A stretch of 64,000 nucleotides of DNA, from the NCBI GenBank assembly GCA_001600695.1, contig BCKQ01000017.1:160629-224628 (forward strand), read 5' to 3'. Both the position numbers and the translations under genes were made by a program. Of the stretch, positions 3,612 through 41,091 are shown piece after piece. The DNA comes from Ascoidea asiatica JCM 7603 (Eukaryota; Fungi; Ascomycota). Below the pieces are notes generated by a model, which saw nothing but the letters and a program-made list of their open reading frames with translations, was not told where the DNA came from and did not search any database. Each line of letters starts with the position of its first letter. Position 1 is the first letter of the stretch.

Positions 3612-5135
3612 ATGACTCCAAAGTCATCTAAAAAACATCAAATCATTCCAAGTTTAATTCCTGAAAATTCTTTGACTTCTAAAATTCATCAAAAACTTAA
3701 AGATTCAGACCAAAGAATTATTGAAACTACAAAAAAAATTATTAATAAAAATCAATTAAATAACCAATCAAAAAATCAAATTCAAAAAAATTCAATAAGA
3801 CCAACAAAAAGAAGAAAAACTGTACCTGATAATCAAAGAAAAAGAGCTTTATTTAGTTGTGATAGATGTAAAAAAAAAAAAACAAAATGTAATAGAATAA
3901 TTTTAAAATCAAATGGTAAAAAAGATATTTATTATGATAATAAAACTCCATGTTTAAATTGTCAAAATGCAAATCAAAATTGTGTTACTACAATCCCAAG
4001 AAAAAGAAGAGTTTATGGTAATATTCAAAATCTTGGTTTACATTATGAAATTTTAATTTGTTTAATTTCTGGTTTATTTCCTGATATTGATGTTAATAAT
4101 ATAACTCAATTAAAAAAATTAGGTAAAAATTTCGATTTAGAAATGCCTGATCCAATTATTGATTATAAAGATAATGATAATGAAAATGATATTAATAATA
4201 ATAATAATATTAATAATGACATTGATATTAACAATGATAATGATAATAACAACAATAATAATAATAATAATAATAATAATGACGATGATGATTCAAAAGA
4301 TTTGACAATTTCAATATTAAGTAATAAATTATTTGAAGTTTTAAAAAATAATGGTATAAGAGCAAAAGCTTTTGATAAAGTAAAAGTTATAGGAGGTGAA
4401 TTAGATCCTTCAACTCTCTCAAATGAAAATGATCAATCAATTTCATCAGATACTAAAATCAATAATAAAATTGATAAAAATGATAATGATATTAAAACTA
4501 ATAATGATAATTCAAATGACAATTCAAAGTCCAATGTAAATAAAAATAATGACAATAAAATCAATGATAATAATAATATTCCAAACCAAAGTAATAATGA
4601 TGAAAACTTCACTGATTCAAATTTCATTATAGCAAAATCAAAAATAAATAACACTGAAGATTATGGAGTTGAAAGAATTGTTTATGATATTCAAGGTAGA
4701 CCACATTATATCGGTTCTGCAGGTTCTCCAGCTTTATTAAATGGTTTAAGTAATTTAATAATTAAAAACAAATGTTCAAAATCTTTAAAAATTTCTAAAC
4801 CTTCATCAAAACCATCAAAATTATTAAAATCCTTAAAATCTTCATCTTTAGAAGAATTTGTTACAACTAATTTCAATTCTTATCCTTCCGAAAAATTAAA
4901 TCAAGTTAGTGATAAAAATTTAAAAAATTTAACTTCAATTAAATCAAAAAAATTATTAGAAAAATTTCCTTTAATTAATTCTTTAAATAAAAATGAATCT
5001 GATTTTTATGTTAAAGTATTTTTTCAACGAATTCATCCATATTTTTATGTATTTGGTAATTCAATATTTAAAGAAAGATATTATCAATTTTGGGATGAAA
5101 TTGAATCAAGTTTTTCAAAAAAATTTCTCTTTTTA

Positions 5136-5169
<34 letters not shown>

Positions 5170-7667
5170 GCAATTATTCAACAAGTAATCCAAACATTAA
5201 CTTAAATATCAACTCACAAAATAAATCAGAAAATAAACCAGAAAATAACTTATCAAATGGCTGGATTGGTTGTATATATATGGTTTGGATTTTAGGTAGA
5301 AGATTTGTTAAATATCCAAATGGTGATCTAGATGATAATTTAGTTAATAAATATTTAGATTCAATTAAATATTTATTACCTGAAATTGTATTAACTCCAA
5401 CGGTAGTTGGAATTAGATTACTTTATTTATATTCTGTTTATTTATATTCAATTAAAAATAGAGATTCTTCTTGGATCTTAATTGGTTTAGCTTTACGTCA
5501 ATCTTTATCTTTAGGAATTCATAGAAAATCTGGTATAAGTTTATATTCAAAAAAAGCTGCAATTATTAGAAAACAATTATGGTGGTCAGTTTATAAATTT
5601 GAAATGGTTTTATGTTCAAATTTTGGTAGAACAACTTCTGTAAATGAAGAGGAAATTAATATTGATTATCCTAATGATATGTCAGTTGTTGAAGGTGATC
5701 CAATATTAACTAAAACTTATGTTCAAAGTGTAAAATTATCAAGAATATTTAATTCAATTTTAAATTCAAGAAAATTATTATATACTGGAGCTTCTATTGA
5801 TTCATCTTCACCTTTAACATTACCAAATGTTGAAAGAACTTTAAAAATTAGAAAAAATCTTTTAAGTTTTATGAGAGATTTAATACCATTAAAACTTAAT
5901 ATTCAAAATATTCTAAAAGATATTAAAACTTTAATATTAAATGGTTATAATATAAATTCAGATTTTCATGAATTCACTGAAAAGGATGATTTAATAATGG
6001 TTAATTTAAGATTTCAAATTAAATTGCATTTACAATATCATTTATATGTTTTAAATTTAACTTTACCATTTATTCTATATATTGTAAATATAACAATTTC
6101 ACAATCAATTACAATTAAAGAATTTGATGATCCAATAAAATTAATAATTAAAAGTGGTATAAAATCTTCAATTTTAATGTCAGAATTACTTGATATTTTA
6201 AATAAACTTAATCAAATTGATGCAACAGTATATTTTGATGTATTTTATGGTTATAATGGTATTATGGCTTTAATACCAATTTTTATATATTTATCATCAA
6301 ATAATATAATTAAAAAAGATAAAAATGAAAAAGGAATTCCAAAATATCATAATACAATATCAATTGAAGGTAAAGAAATTGATAAAAAATTAATTTTAGA
6401 ATGTATTAAAAAAATAAGAGGCGCAATGAAAAACAAGTATGCAAAAACTGATGGAACTATGAAAAGAAGTTATGAAGTCTGTGAAACATTATTAAAAGAT
6501 CTTGGACTTCTTAATATTCTTGATAGATCAGTAAAATCAGATACAAATAGACCATTAAATCTTGAATTATCATTTAAAGCAGATGGATATGAATATAATG
6601 GAAGTTCTGATATTGATGAAAAAATCAAAAAAATTAAAAAACGATGGCAAGCAAGAATTAATGGAAATAATTTTTTATCAAGTTCATTAATCACAAAACC
6701 TGAAATAATTTCAAAAAGTTTATCAACTCCTCCTATAGTTGATTCTTCAATAATTGATGTAAAAAACAAAGAAAACAAAACTGCAAGTGAACATTTTTTA
6801 AATTCAAAAGAAGATAAGTTTACTTATAATGCAGCTGAACGAGAAAGTAAAATTTTCTTCAATAATTATCATGAAAGTGCCGAAAGGCTAACAGATGTTT
6901 ATTCTTCAAGTCTCAATCAACCATCCCGAAACTCGGTATTTCCTTACGGGAATAATAATCAAGAAAATAATCAAGGATCCTCAATTTATCAGCAAAATGC
7001 TTCATTTCCTTTAAATAATAGTAAAAATCTGACATCAGATTATCGTACTCCAATGAATAGTGAAATAAGAAGTAATTTTTCAGAAACAAGTGAAATAAGT
7101 ACAGAACCAGAAGTAATTCTTAATCATGAGATGATTGATTCTTTTTTTCAAGTTGCAAGTAATACCCTCAATTTCAATAACCCTTTTTATCCAAATAGAG
7201 GTCCAGATAATTCTCAAATGGCCAATAATGCTCCTTCTTGTTCTAATGATACTTCTACAAATATCTGCAATAATAACAATCATAATAATAATAGTTGTAA
7301 TAATGGGAATGGGAATGTTATAAATAATTGCGATAATTGTAATATGAATAATAATATTTCTACTGGCCCTAACAACGGTAATAACAATCTATTTGCAAAC
7401 GACTATTTATCTGAATCGTCAAATTATAACATATTTTATCAAAACAGCTATCAAAATAGTAATCAAATTGACAATCAAATTGAAAATCAAAATATTAATC
7501 AAAGCAACCTTCAAAACAATACTCAAAACAATGTTCAAAACACTACTACTCGACAAAACAATTATATGGATGAAAACTTAAGAAAAGTGATGGCACAAAG
7601 CAACGACTTGTTCAAGTACGTGGACATTGAAGATTTGCAAGACCTTTTTGATTCTAAAATACTATAA
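3612..7667 (+). CDS. Zn(II)2Cys6 fungal transcription factor with middle homology region
   Basis: CX2CX6CX20CX2CX6C; MHR-type motif LALRQSLSLGIHR...RKQLWWSVY..E...S..FGR; acidic-hydrophobic C terminus; poly-Asn tracts. Confidence 0.92.
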
Positions 7668-7785
7668 CTTGCATAGCTCTTCCAATTAATTCTGTTATCA
7701 TCCTGTATTATTTTCTAAATATTTTATATCATCAACTGTATTATTTATTATATTTCGTTGTTTGCTTTCCAATTGAGTTTTTTCA

Positions 7786-7940
7786 GGGTCCGAAAAGAGC
7801 CGGCGCCAGGCCTTATTTTTTTCCGCTGGGTCTGGGCCGGTGAAAATGACCTTTTTGGAGCCCTACTTTTTTGGGTGGTAAAATTTCATTTTCCTTTCCA
7901 GAGGACAAATTGCAAAGAAACATGAAAAAAGAATATAAAA
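7786..7940 (+). promoter_or_regulatory. GC-rich promoter of the snoRNA host unit (Tbf1-like AGCCCTA, RRPE-like element, TATAAAA)
   Basis: GC island between two convergent CDSs, so it serves neither; AGCCCTA about 7859-7865; TATAAAA about 7934; lies just upstream of the intron. Confidence 0.55.
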
Positions 7941-8054
7941 GAATAAAAGAAACTTGAAAAGAATATGAAAAAATATTAGATCAAAAATAAGAATATTCAA
8001 GAAGAAAGATTTATATTTAAATGATTTTGGCTTTACCACTTTTCTAATCAAAAG

Positions 8055-8301
8055 GTATGTATTGAAGCTATTAAAAGGAATGAGATGAATTGAAATGTTA
8101 TGAAATGAATGAAAACTCAAATGATTAAAACTTCTGTCAATCCACTGAATTAATTTTGTCAAATATTTAATTAGCAATATGTCGAACTTGTGTCGTATGA
8201 TTTTGTTTTCATTCAATCATTTATAAATCATCTTCAATCTCAAATTTAAGATTATTTCAAGAAATACTTAAAGGACCATAGTTTACTAACTTTCTTTTTA
8301 G
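8055..8301 (+). other. Spliceosomal intron of a non-coding snoRNA host transcript
   Basis: AAG|GTATGT at 8055, TACTAAC at 8284-8290, pyrimidine tract, TAG at 8299-8301; nearby upstream ATGs (7922, 7965, 8021) stop before the donor. Confidence 0.88.
8107..8214 (+). ncRNA. Intronic box C/D snoRNA guiding 18S 2'-O-methylation at GGAU*UGACAGA (human U1288, S. cerevisiae U1231 equivalent; SNORD110/snoR14-like)
   Basis: 10-bp external stem GAATGAAAAC/GTTTTCATTC; box C ATGATTA 8121-8127; guide TCTGTCAATCC 8133-8143; D' CTGA 8145-8148; C' ATGTCGA 8179-8185; D ATGA 8197-8200; second antisense TTGTGTC to the adjacent 18S GACACAA. Confidence 0.85.
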
Positions 8302-8534
8302 TTTTTCAAGTATTCATAAAACTATATACTTTCTTTTAATAAATATCTTTTTTTTTTAAATTTTCAAAAAATCATATTTTCTTACACTAAATTTGATTAA
8401 ATTATGCTGTAGTTAAATTCTTTACTTTATTTTTCTTTTTTTTTTTTTTTTTTTTCTATTTACAGTTCTATATATATATAAATGACTTTCATTCCTGCAA
8501 AAGGATACTAAAAACTATTGAAAATGCTAAAAAA

Positions 8535-11243
8535 CTAAGATACATTCCCTTTGAAAAAACTCCAATTTTTCCATTCTTCATTTGATTCTTTAAACTGTTT
8601 CTCTTTCATTTCTTTTGAGATTCTCTCTGATCTTTTCTTAAACCAATTTTTTAAGTCTGAGCTTGGGTTTTCTTTAAAATTATATTTTTGATCCACTAAT
8701 TTATCAATTAATTTATTATAATTAACTTTATATGAATCTTCAATTATCTTTATAATTGAAAATTGCTTAAGATCATATGATGCTTTGAAAAAATTAATCA
8801 ATAAATCAATTTCTATTGATTTTTTATTTTTACTTTTTTTACAAAATTCTTCTAAAACTTCATCACTAATAATATCTTCAATTGAGAAATAATTTTTGTA
8901 AATCTCATTGAATTTTTTAAAGTTATTTTTATAACAATTATTTAAAAAATTAATTTTTTCATTATATAAATTCATCAAATATAATTTTTCATATATATTA
9001 AATATCCATTTTAATCTTAATATATCTTTTTTTATCAAACAAAATTCAACTATTAAATTTATAAGTTTATAATTAAATATTAATTTTAATTCTTCAAAAT
9101 TTTTGAAATTATAAATTGATTTAAATCTTACTGGAATAATATTAAATTCATTTCTTAGGAAAATCCTTAGTTGTTTTTTATTATTTGAAGGATTTTCAAC
9201 AATTATTGAATTGAATATAACTTTATTTAATAATAAATTAAATGTATTAAACTCTTTAAAGATTAAACAAGTATAAAGTAATTCATTTATACACTCACTT
9301 GAAGTTGTAAATAATGATGATCCTTTCCTTTTAAATTTTTTCCTAAATTCTTTTAATAAAATTTTATTACCTCCATAATTAGAATTTCGTACAATTAGTC
9401 TTAAATTGTTTAAATTTTTATTATAAAAAAATAAATTTACTAATTTATGCTGATATTTCTTTCTTGAATTTGAAATATGAATAATTCTGTATGGTTTATT
9501 TGTTAATTTATTTCTAAAAATTATTTTTCTGAATTTGTTGCTTTTTCTTCTTCTTTTTAATAGTAATCTATCTTTATTCATTCCCATAAATTTAACTACG
9601 GATTCTCTAGGAGCTATCACTTGTCTTTCAGAAAAGATATTTGTATTGGACACATTTTCTAAATTTTTCTTAACAGGTTTTGATATTAAATTAATGTCAG
9701 TTGATGATAAAGGAATGAATTCATAAACAAAAATTTTCAAATCTTCTTGATTAATTTTTGTTATTTTTTTTGTAAGATTTATCTCTTTAATTTTTTCCTG
9801 ATTATAAGATTTAGAATAAGATAAATCTCTGGAAGGTAAATTTCTGTAAAAATTTTGATAATCAAAATTATTTGATTTTTTTTGAAATTTTAACAATTTA
9901 ATTAATTTCAAAAAAATTTTTTTATTTTTTGACTGATAAGAAAATTTAATTAAATTTCTAAAGGTATCATGATTTGAGTTTGGAAGTAAAATCAAACTTT
10001 TTGGATTATTTTTGAATAATAGTAAACTTGAAATTATATATAAATAATTATTAAAATTTATATTATAATTTATATTCGGATTTTCATTTAAATTCAACGA
10101 ATTCAAATTTATTAATTTTTTAAAAATATTTAAACATAAATCATTTGTTATTTTGAAATCATTCAATAAAGAAGATTTAATTAAAAGCTTTGAAATATTT
10201 ATAATTAAATCTTCTTTAATTTTATTAGATTTGAAATTTTTAATGATCTGGTTTAATTCACTATCAAATGGCTTTATTAATTCTTCAAAACTATCAATAT
10301 CTATCAATTTATTTGAATTCTTTGATTCGAATAAAGAATTTTCAACCATTTTAAAACTTTTATGTTCATAAATATTATTCTCATTATTGATATTGTTATT
10401 AATATGTGATAAAGAATTCATGATTGAATTATTAAATGAATTATTTGAATCATAATAAACATATTTTGAAGAGGTTAAATTTTTATATAAAAGCTGTTTG
10501 AAATTTGAATTTATATTGAATAGAATTGAATTTAGAGTTAGTTTCTGTTTAGATAAATCTGATAAATAATTTGGGTAAATAATTTGAAGAAATTTTTTCA
10601 AAGGACTCAATTGTAAATCTGATAATTTAATATCATAATTACTTAAGTTTTTTATAAGTTTATGATTTTTCCCTTTTCTATTCTTAAATTTTAAGTTATT
10701 GTAACTTTTATTATTATCATCATTGAATTGATTATTCATGGAGTTTTTGATATAAGTTTCGAATATTAAAATGGATAAAAATTGGCTCAAAATATAATTA
10801 GATAAATTTTGAGTTGAACTTAAACTAACTATTGAATTCTTTTCAGAACTCTTTGAAGATAAGTGAGTATTGAATATATCTTCATCAATAAAATCCTCAA
10901 TTGATTCTTTCTTAGATTCATTATTGAAATCAGATAAATCAGATTTATTGTTAAAATATAATTCTAAAGGCAAATCATCTAGCCACCTAATGTAATTGGA
11001 CAAGTTCTTCTTATTTTTATGATTTGATTCCAATTCCAATTGCAATTTTAATAATAATATGTCATCACTGTTTCTTTTCTCTAGTTTGTTTATACTTTTT
11101 ATATTGTTTGAATTGGATTTTATATCGAAAGTTGTCAGAATTGTGGAACATGAAATTGATCTGGATATTAGAAGACATGTTGAACTAGAATGATTAATCT
11201 TTATTCTAGACAACATACTCATCATCATCATCATCATCATCAT
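8535..11243 (-). CDS. Uncharacterised 902-aa protein, probably mitochondrial
   Basis: Long ORF; Arg/Ser-rich, acid-free N terminus; Puf3 motif TGTAAATA in the 3' UTR; start ambiguous within an (ATG)n run. Confidence 0.75.
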   Translation of the reverse strand: MMMMMMMMSMLSRIKINHSSSTCLLISRSISCSTILTTFDIKSNSNNIKSINKLEKRNSDDILLLKLQLELESNHKNKKNLSNYIRWLDDLPLELYFNNKSDLSDFNNESKKESIEDFIDEDIFNTHLSSKSSEKNSIVSLSSTQNLSNYILSQFLSILIFETYIKNSMNNQFNDDNNKSYNNLKFKNRKGKNHKLIKNLSNYDIKLSDLQLSPLKKFLQIIYPNYLSDLSKQKLTLNSILFNINSNFKQLLYKNLTSSKYVYYDSNNSFNNSIMNSLSHINNNINNENNIYEHKSFKMVENSLFESKNSNKLIDIDSFEELIKPFDSELNQIIKNFKSNKIKEDLIINISKLLIKSSLLNDFKITNDLCLNIFKKLINLNSLNLNENPNINYNINFNNYLYIISSLLLFKNNPKSLILLPNSNHDTFRNLIKFSYQSKNKKIFLKLIKLLKFQKKSNNFDYQNFYRNLPSRDLSYSKSYNQEKIKEINLTKKITKINQEDLKIFVYEFIPLSSTDINLISKPVKKNLENVSNTNIFSERQVIAPRESVVKFMGMNKDRLLLKRRRKSNKFRKIIFRNKLTNKPYRIIHISNSRKKYQHKLVNLFFYNKNLNNLRLIVRNSNYGGNKILLKEFRKKFKRKGSSLFTTSSECINELLYTCLIFKEFNTFNLLLNKVIFNSIIVENPSNNKKQLRIFLRNEFNIIPVRFKSIYNFKNFEELKLIFNYKLINLIVEFCLIKKDILRLKWIFNIYEKLYLMNLYNEKINFLNNCYKNNFKKFNEIYKNYFSIEDIISDEVLEEFCKKSKNKKSIEIDLLINFFKASYDLKQFSIIKIIEDSYKVNYNKLIDKLVDQKYNFKENPSSDLKNWFKKRSERISKEMKEKQFKESNEEWKNWSFFKGNVS

Positions 11244-27526: not shown

Positions 27527-28855
27527 ATATAGAAGAATATCATAAATGATTATTTAATGATTGAATAAATAAAATAATTCAATAATTATAATCTAATGAT
27601 TAAAAGATAATTCTTGGGTTTTCCTTCTTTTTTAATTCGATTTTCTTCAAATCTCTTTGATTTCCAGTGAAGAATTGAAATTTGAAATATTCATCAATAA
27701 CGACAAGAAAATAAGAACACGTGATGTTTTTTTATATATTTAATGAAATAAAGCAGTGGCGGATAATGCGCACGGAATAGTAAGTAAAGCCACGGATAGT
27801 AAATTAGGAACAACGGATTTGAAATGAGGCTAGTGAATTTTTAATTCACGGCTAGTGGTATAGTGGCTAGTGTATAGTGGCTAGTGTATAGATGGCGATT
27901 TTGTGAGTGAGGATTAAACACACCTGGGATCTAGGAGTGTGAAGAATTATTGGAGCATTTAAAACTGTCCTGTTGTAAAAGGGATTTATCGTGGACAACA
28001 GCACCAGTAGCAGGACAGACCGCGCGTTCCGCACAGCTGGCTGAGCAGCAGAAGCGCAGCAGCAGAAGGGGCTGGTCGGCCGGCCAGCAAAAGGCCACTG
28101 GCCGGGTGCGCCGCTAGCTGGAGAACTCAGCTACCCCAGCGAGAAATGAGAGCGCGGTGATTCGCCGGTGGCCGGGGATGAGTGCGGAGTAGTACTAAGT
28201 ACTAACAGTGGTGGTACTGTTAGTATGTGAGTGTTCAGTTCTCTGTGCCCTCTCTGTTTCAGTGCGAGTGCTGTAAATGTTTGTTGTGTGCTCGTTCTGC
28301 TTAAGTACTGGAAGTTACTGGTGCTATTTTCTTGAGTACTGTTTCTGGTACTCCGAGTTTTTGTCTGAGCGTTTGACTGTTTCTGCTGCTCTTGCACCAA
28401 ATTTAGCCCATTTTCAGATTCACCCCAATTCAGATCACTCTCAATGAAAGAAGGAACTGGGAGAAGTGAAATTGAATCAAATCAATCTCAATTCACTTAT
28501 ATTCAATATATTCAATTACATTAAACTATTCAAACAAGTCAATTCAATATTCATTTTCTCTTTCAGTTCTCTTTCAAATTAATAATCAATTAACCATATT
28601 CATTTTATTCAATTTCACTTAATAATAGGTTTCGGTAATGATAATATTATTTAAGAATTGTTTAATAATCTGAATATCATCATTACTCTTTAAATTTATC
28701 TTTATATCTACATTTATATTCTTTTTATATTCTTTTTATATTCTTCTCTTATTCATATCTATATTCTTTTCTCATTCATATTCATTTTCATATTCATATT
28801 CATAATCTTACTCATATTCTTATTCTTATAAATAGTAACAATAATAATAAAAACA

Positions 28856-40994: not shown

Positions 40995-41091
40995 CGACAC
41001 AAGCAGGATTTGAACCTGCGCGGGAGAACCCAAAAGATGCCCCAATTTACAAGATTCGAGTCTTTCGCCTTAACCACTCGGCCATTGTGTC
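40995..41091 (-). tRNA. tRNA-Ser(CGA) with 16-nt intron (41039-41054)
   Basis: Acceptor GACACAA/TTGTGTC, G73, A box TGGCCGAGTGG, anticodon stem AAAGA/TCTTT with CGA at 41058-41056, long variable arm GGG-TTCT-CCC, B box GGTTCAAATCC, T-tract terminator. Confidence 0.97.

Follow-up and report, generated by a model that had tools for sequence, protein, structure and literature searches.

A predicted box C/D snoRNA with variant boxes in the intron of a putative non-coding host gene of Ascoidea asiatica, with orthologues in five other budding yeasts

Results

Signals of a spliced non-coding gene lie between two convergent reading frames

In the 64,000-nucleotide stretch of Ascoidea asiatica DNA analysed here, referred to below as the window, two open reading frames converge on a short intergenic region. 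The plus-strand frame (3612-7667) encodes a fungal transcription factor (Pfam PF04082), and the minus-strand frame (8535-11243) encodes a 902-residue product, beyond which lie TRP2 and then a MutS-family gene. A sequence-only reading of this DNA had proposed that a spliced host gene without a protein product is hidden between the convergent frames, downstream of a GC island with promoter-like motifs, and both the arrangement of the frames and every motif that it named proved to be in place. The GC-rich patch (7756-7882), which we take to be the promoter of the host gene, peaks at 57% GC versus 25% for the window and contains a Tbf1-like site, AGCCCTA (7859-7865), that matches the consensus ARCCCTAA at seven of eight positions (PMC5416754). 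A TATA-like box, TATAAAA (7934-7940), lies 182 nt upstream of the snoRNA described below and is weak by itself; 45 copies of this motif on the plus strand of the window make it uninformative alone. The window's most pronounced GC island (71%) lies elsewhere, at 27958-28245, and is likewise promoter-like; each strand carries TACTAAC at 28200-28225.

Downstream of the TATA-like box we place a non-coding exon 1 (7941-8054), with the transcript predicted to start somewhere within this stretch, followed by a 247-nt spliceosomal intron (8055-8301) and a non-coding exon 2 (8302-8400) whose 3' end is likewise a prediction. The intron is delimited by the 5' splice site GTATGT (8055-8060), the branch point TACTAAC (8284-8290), and the 3' splice site TAG (8299-8301), which is preceded by a pyrimidine tract. 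When the intergenic region was dinucleotide-shuffled 10,000 times, a donor-branch-acceptor pattern of this kind arose in 13 cases. The proposal that the exons lack coding capacity was borne out, as ATG-started frames in the two exon stretches reach at most 11 codons, all exon-1 frames terminate upstream of the donor, and the exon 2 stretch contains no ATG upstream of 8404. A coding micro-exon gene was rejected on the basis of the frame lengths and the exon-1 stops, and a minus-strand TTG frame (7863-8216) was set aside as having no early ATG.

The Tbf1-like site, which the sequence-only reading had placed in the promoter-like island, is found again at two further snoRNA hosts in this genome and at two of the orthologues described below. 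Its core, AGCCCT, lies 257 nt upstream of the snoRNA, versus a background of 0.03 occurrences per 200 nt. In the same genome, AGCCCT is found 325 nt upstream of snR48 and in three copies 269-321 nt upstream of snR47, both of which also sit between a donor and a branch point; the TATA-like box of the snR47 host lies 161 nt upstream of its snoRNA. The motif is also present upstream of the Brettanomyces and Nadsonia orthologues. In C. albicans and D. hansenii, genes for box C/D snoRNAs are marked by Tbf1 motifs (PMC4138321), and we infer that Tbf1 would bind the host promoter here. The snR47 gene and its upstream 400 nt are present in identical form on two contigs (C49:5026-5116 and C56:1346-1436), reflecting either duplication or assembly redundancy.

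The intron encloses a predicted box C/D snoRNA with a compensated pair of boxes

The suggestion that the intron hosts a snoRNA was likewise sustained. A box C/D snoRNA of the snoR14/SNORD110/N. crassa CD44 family occupies approximately 8117-8204 on the plus strand and lies wholly between the consensus donor and branch point, 66 nt past the former and 83 nt short of the latter, as counted to the branch point from box D. It comprises box C in the variant form AUGAUUA (8121-8127), which is invariant in six budding yeasts, a canonical box D' CUGA (8145-8148), and box D in the variant form AUGA (8197-8200), which is present in all six yeasts when the orthologous boxes are located with a pattern that assumes AUGA. 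There is no CUGA downstream of this box within the intron. A candidate box C' AUGUCGA (8179-8185), read by eye, is the least certain part of the model; it is degenerate here and UGACGA-like in most orthologues. An external stem closes the RNA, its 5' arm (8106-8116) and 3' arm (8205-8215) forming an 11-nt perfect inverted repeat that belongs to the minimum free energy fold; the whole-intron fold is no better than that of shuffled sequences (z -0.54). The C-to-D span of 80 nt and the 11-bp terminal stem fall within the dimensions of box C/D RNAs (approximately 70-130 nt).

Boxes C and D would form the C/D kink-turn as a compensated variant rather than as the literal consensus RUGAUGA/CUGA. The G.A, A.G, and U.U positions of the kink-turn are intact in all six yeasts, and each of the six has U-A in place of the G-C that, in the consensus, joins position 6 of box C to position 1 of box D. 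This compensated pair of boxes has been described in expressed nucleomorph snoRNAs, in a study that cites archaeal mutagenesis for rescue of protein binding (PMC6461891). In fungi, the first base of the D box is substituted in only 4.2% of cases, usually by A (PMC5824354).

A model built from the orthologues of five other yeasts matched 8117-8207 with an E-value of 5.5e-10, and in a search of the whole genome it returned this locus alone (E 7.3e-8; next best 0.4), indicating that the snoRNA is single-copy. Rfam at its gathering threshold reported only a tRNA in the whole window, and two weak matches (SNORD110 and SNORD19B) fell on one stretch inside the intron. As the match to RF00610 (SNORD110) scored 15 bits versus a gathering threshold of 64, the RNA falls outside RF00610 in Rfam's own definition, and we assign it to the SNORD110 family because guide, target, and layout are shared. 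A minus-strand match to snoR23 was dismissed as chance (E 3.3), and a search for the snR68 family gave no match and was uninformative. The tRNA reported by Rfam (40995-41091, minus strand) contains an intron and a long variable arm, and ARAGORN, run with bacterial settings, did not report it. The final 9 nt of this tRNA are identical to window positions 8187-8195, which we take as coincidence.

The guide is complementary to a conserved segment of 18S rRNA

Immediately upstream of box D', positions 8133-8143 form a perfect 11-bp complement of 18S rRNA 1228-1238 (-18.7 kcal/mol), a conserved segment that is equally complementary to the guide in the Rfam consensus. The guide is followed by one unpaired base and then by CUGA, an arrangement in keeping with an antisense element of at least 10 nt directly before D or D', and because CUGA lies one base past the guide, the D'+5 rule selects U1231 (S. 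cerevisiae numbering). A guide with a D' box of this kind was found in 72 of 20,000 shuffled introns, and in the 64-kb window this guide is the only complement of at least 11 nt that precedes a CUGA. It is invariant across the five orthologues. We infer from these features that the snoRNA directs 2'-O-methylation of 18S U1231, equivalent to human Um1288 and Arabidopsis Um1232/1235.

Pairing was evaluated against a heterologous, complete 1800-nt fungal 18S taken from a contig that contaminates a bacterial assembly; the patterns used to search for 18S were short, and Rfam confirmed the identity of the sequences retrieved. An exact 11-mer search of the assembly did not find the genome's own 18S rDNA, and the array seems to be absent or masked. 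Of the six exact matches to the guide in the genome, one is the snoRNA locus, three are copies of a repeated element, and two are unrelated sites; none is rDNA. As the native 18S was not found, pairing with this yeast's own 18S is predicted from conservation. The three identical copies of the repeated element (C6:3413, C6:13740, and C19:276389) lie near contig ends and, according to Rfam, are not rDNA. At least 80 stretches of fungal rDNA are present as contaminant contigs in GTDB bacterial assemblies.

A second arm complements the adjacent 18S stretch

Upstream of box D, positions 8188-8194 are complementary to 18S 1218-1224, adjoining the guide target at a distance of three bases. In all six yeasts a 5-8-nt complement of the same 18S stretch (about 1217-1225) is found upstream of box D, at distances of 2, 2, 2, 2, 4, and 9 nt. 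Because it is short and variably spaced from box D, the second arm fits the extra base-pairing elements of S. cerevisiae, in which additional pairing adjoining the target raises methylation 2-5 fold (PMC3116282), and on its sequence it is best read as such an element. Were it instead a true D-box guide methylating C1220, this would be a double-guide snoRNA, and the 2-nt spacing in four of the six yeasts does place D+5 at C1220. However, the duplex at C1220 would be only 5-8 bp, versus a guide minimum of 10 bp (PMC2780460), the arm lies 4 nt from box D in Komagataella and 9 nt from it in Brettanomyces, and Cm1220 is absent from cross-species methylation tables (PMC8583080, PMC11542601), all of which make a second guide unlikely. 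Arms complementary to 18S upstream of the target also occur in homologues from other eukaryotes (L116:1573-1656, L199:659-752, and L224:1044-1128). The L116 arm matches the alternative 18S helix sequence of L020, a hint of covariation.

Orthologues adjoin TRM112 in four other budding yeasts

A metagenome locus carrying the same elements (L220) was identified as Brettanomyces bruxellensis and adjoins TRM112. Searching the neighbourhood of TRM112 yielded further orthologues in Komagataella phaffii, Saccharomycopsis crataegensis, Cyberlindnera fabianii, and Nadsonia fulvescens, and box C AUGAUUA, the guide, and D' CUGA are common to these five yeasts and Ascoidea. For four of the five orthologues, the host intron is about 222-286 nt long and has a consensus donor and branch point, matching the proposed placement of the snoRNA between splice signals; the Komagataella orthologue has a TATA box and lacks intron signals. 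In the Cyberlindnera orthologue (L240:9530-9645, minus strand), D' and C' are separated by a GC-rich, hairpin-like insertion of roughly 24 nt.

TRM112 is a cofactor of rRNA and tRNA methyltransferases. The snoRNA host is divergent from TRM112 in Brettanomyces, Komagataella, Cyberlindnera, and Nadsonia, and it is possible that the two share a ribosome-biogenesis promoter. The upstream gene of the Saccharomycopsis orthologue is a divergent MutS gene, and in Ascoidea TRM112 is located on another contig (C2), indicating that its linkage to the snoRNA has been broken. No copy was found near TRM112 in B. naardenensis, Pichia kudriavzevii, Ogataea philodendri, Kuraishia, or Babjeviella, a result that concerns this neighbourhood and does not imply loss.

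The other flank of the Ascoidea locus retains synteny with Komagataella. Residues 656-764 of the 902-aa frame match a 467-aa frame beside Komagataella TRM112 (L234:3316-4719; E 1.6e-14), and this frame also converges on the snoRNA copy of that genome. The 902-aa frame has no Pfam match and no relatives by word search; the Komagataella match marks it as a fast-evolving syntenic gene, not an orphan. The best relative of TRP2 is that of Ascoidea rubescens (78%), and when synteny was followed from TRP2, the snoRNA was not reached in A. rubescens, Saccharomycopsis, or Wickerhamomyces.

Discussion

Taken together, the analysis points to a non-coding host gene, very probably transcribed by RNA polymerase II, that releases an intronic box C/D snoRNA; transcription, splicing, and methylation at this locus are each deduced from the features described above. 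We propose that a Tbf1-type promoter (7756-7940) would drive a short Pol II transcript, whose 247-nt intron would be spliced, debranched, and trimmed to an RNA of roughly 88 nt, with snoRNP proteins at the C/D kink-turn protecting the trimmed RNA and the two short exons left as a by-product. Boxes C AUGAUUA and D AUGA would stay paired via the G-C to U-A swap, and the D' guide would pair with 18S 1228-1238, allowing fibrillarin (Nop1) to 2'-O-methylate U1231 according to the D+5 rule. The second arm may help to hold or open the adjacent 18S helix.

A different source for the intron would be the transcription-factor gene (3612-7667), which lies on the same strand with only 388 nt between its stop and the donor; the snoRNA could then reside in a long 3' UTR with no separate host, and snoRNA-bearing 3'-UTR introns do exist in Candida (PMC5033589). 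We regard this as very unlikely, as the GC patch, AGCCCT, and TATA-like box intervene between the factor's stop and the intron, as at other snoRNA hosts, and in A. rubescens the stop of the factor abuts TRP2 with no snoRNA between them. Moreover, the upstream gene is divergent in the orthologues, being TRM112 in four and the MutS gene in Saccharomycopsis, so no same-strand mRNA can host their snoRNA. It is also very unlikely that a genuine snoRNA is released here without splicing of its precursor, for instance through Rnt1 or exonucleases acting on the external stem, with the intron signals being vestigial. The long flanking stem and the Komagataella orthologue without intron signals would suit such processing, but a perfect donor, branch point, and acceptor, found here and in four distant yeasts, would decay without selection, and the external stem encloses the snoRNA and carries no demonstrated Rnt1 tetraloop. 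That these are chance motifs in AT-rich intergenic DNA, with no gene at all, might be argued from the lack of an above-threshold Rfam match and the unremarkable fold of the whole intron. The shuffle tests, the five orthologues, the conserved neighbour, and the genome-wide unique match of the model make this extremely improbable, and conservation effectively refutes it. The intronic snoRNA in a non-coding host is our strongly preferred reading.

The layout of this gene is known and ordinary, and the family is known elsewhere in eukaryotes. The sequence-only reading had compared the arrangement with that of Candida-type yeasts, and it is indeed documented as common in Candida, where about half of the snoRNAs are intronic and many reside in non-coding hosts (PMC5033589). 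The Um1231-equivalent mark is known in humans, plants, and moulds and is missing from S. cerevisiae (PMC2780460, PMC8583080); in plant tables, Um1235/1232 is given as the equivalent of human Um1288, with no entry for S. cerevisiae (PMC8583080, PMC11542601). Candida snoRNAs named as having no S. cerevisiae counterpart are CD39, LSU-C2809, LSU-G1431, and LSU-G364 (PMC5033589). Our literature search, whose scope lay outside the Canzler 2018 supplements and Mitrovich 2010, found no record of the Um1231-guide family in budding yeasts, and we hold the chances that the family is unrecorded there to be evenly balanced. The evidence is compatible with a reading in which the family has been kept across much of Saccharomycotina in an AUGAUUA/AUGA form that consensus-box screens miss.

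An 18S methylation that is common to humans and plants (Um1288/Um1232) and absent in baker's yeast is predicted for Komagataella, Brettanomyces, Cyberlindnera, Saccharomycopsis, Nadsonia, and this Ascoidea, and Komagataella phaffii would offer a ready genetic system in which to study the function of the mark. The variant boxes show how yeast snoRNAs can be undercounted when annotation relies on consensus boxes and on homology to S. cerevisiae. The Komagataella copy, which has no intron, is consistent with the way in which snoRNA hosts are known to lose their introns.

A pattern scan of metagenomes retrieved about 118 non-mammalian loci with box C, the same guide, and D', two further loci that begin like mammalian SNORD110 having been left out as possibly human. 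An HMM of the loci from outside budding yeasts matched window positions 8125-8152 with an E-value of 2e-4, a test that is partly circular because the metagenome set was picked by its guide pattern. Among the closest known relatives is N. crassa CD44, an intronic RNA of 85 nt, detected by northern blot and reverse transcription. It is listed as the guide for 18S Um1227, and its homologues are given as snR82 in S. pombe, snoR14 in Arabidopsis, and HBII-55 in humans, with none in S. cerevisiae (PMC2780460). The Ascoidea RNA has the D' guide to the Um1231-equivalent site that defines this family, and it shares with CD44 the same 12 nt preceding box D', the same target, a similar length, and an intronic location. 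It differs from CD44, snR82, snoR14, and HBII-55 (SNORD110, RF00610) in its boxes, which are AUGAUUA/AUGA here and UGAUGA/CUGA there. The guide duplex is 11 bp here versus the 15 listed for CD44, and the D side carries an arm complementary to the adjacent 18S stretch, whereas that of CD44 is a predicted guide for 26S-Cm776.

In its gene structure, the locus resembles those of Candida snR50 and snR65, each a monocistronic non-coding host with one intron (PMC5033589) and a Tbf1-type promoter motif (PMC4138321), although the Um1231-guide family is not among the listed Candida snoRNAs, with no CD44 in the supplement. The second arm recalls S. cerevisiae snR75, snR76, and snR70, in which a short conserved rRNA-complementary element lies in the unused second-guide region and pairs next to the methylation site (PMC3116282); the element described here differs in that only 2 nt separate it from box D in four species, and it is known from sequence. 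The variant boxes have a close parallel in GtNM-R12-14 of the Guillardia theta nucleomorph (PMC6461891), which has the same compensatory AUGAUU/AUGA pair, and since Guillardia belongs to an unrelated lineage, the box variant probably originated independently in the two.
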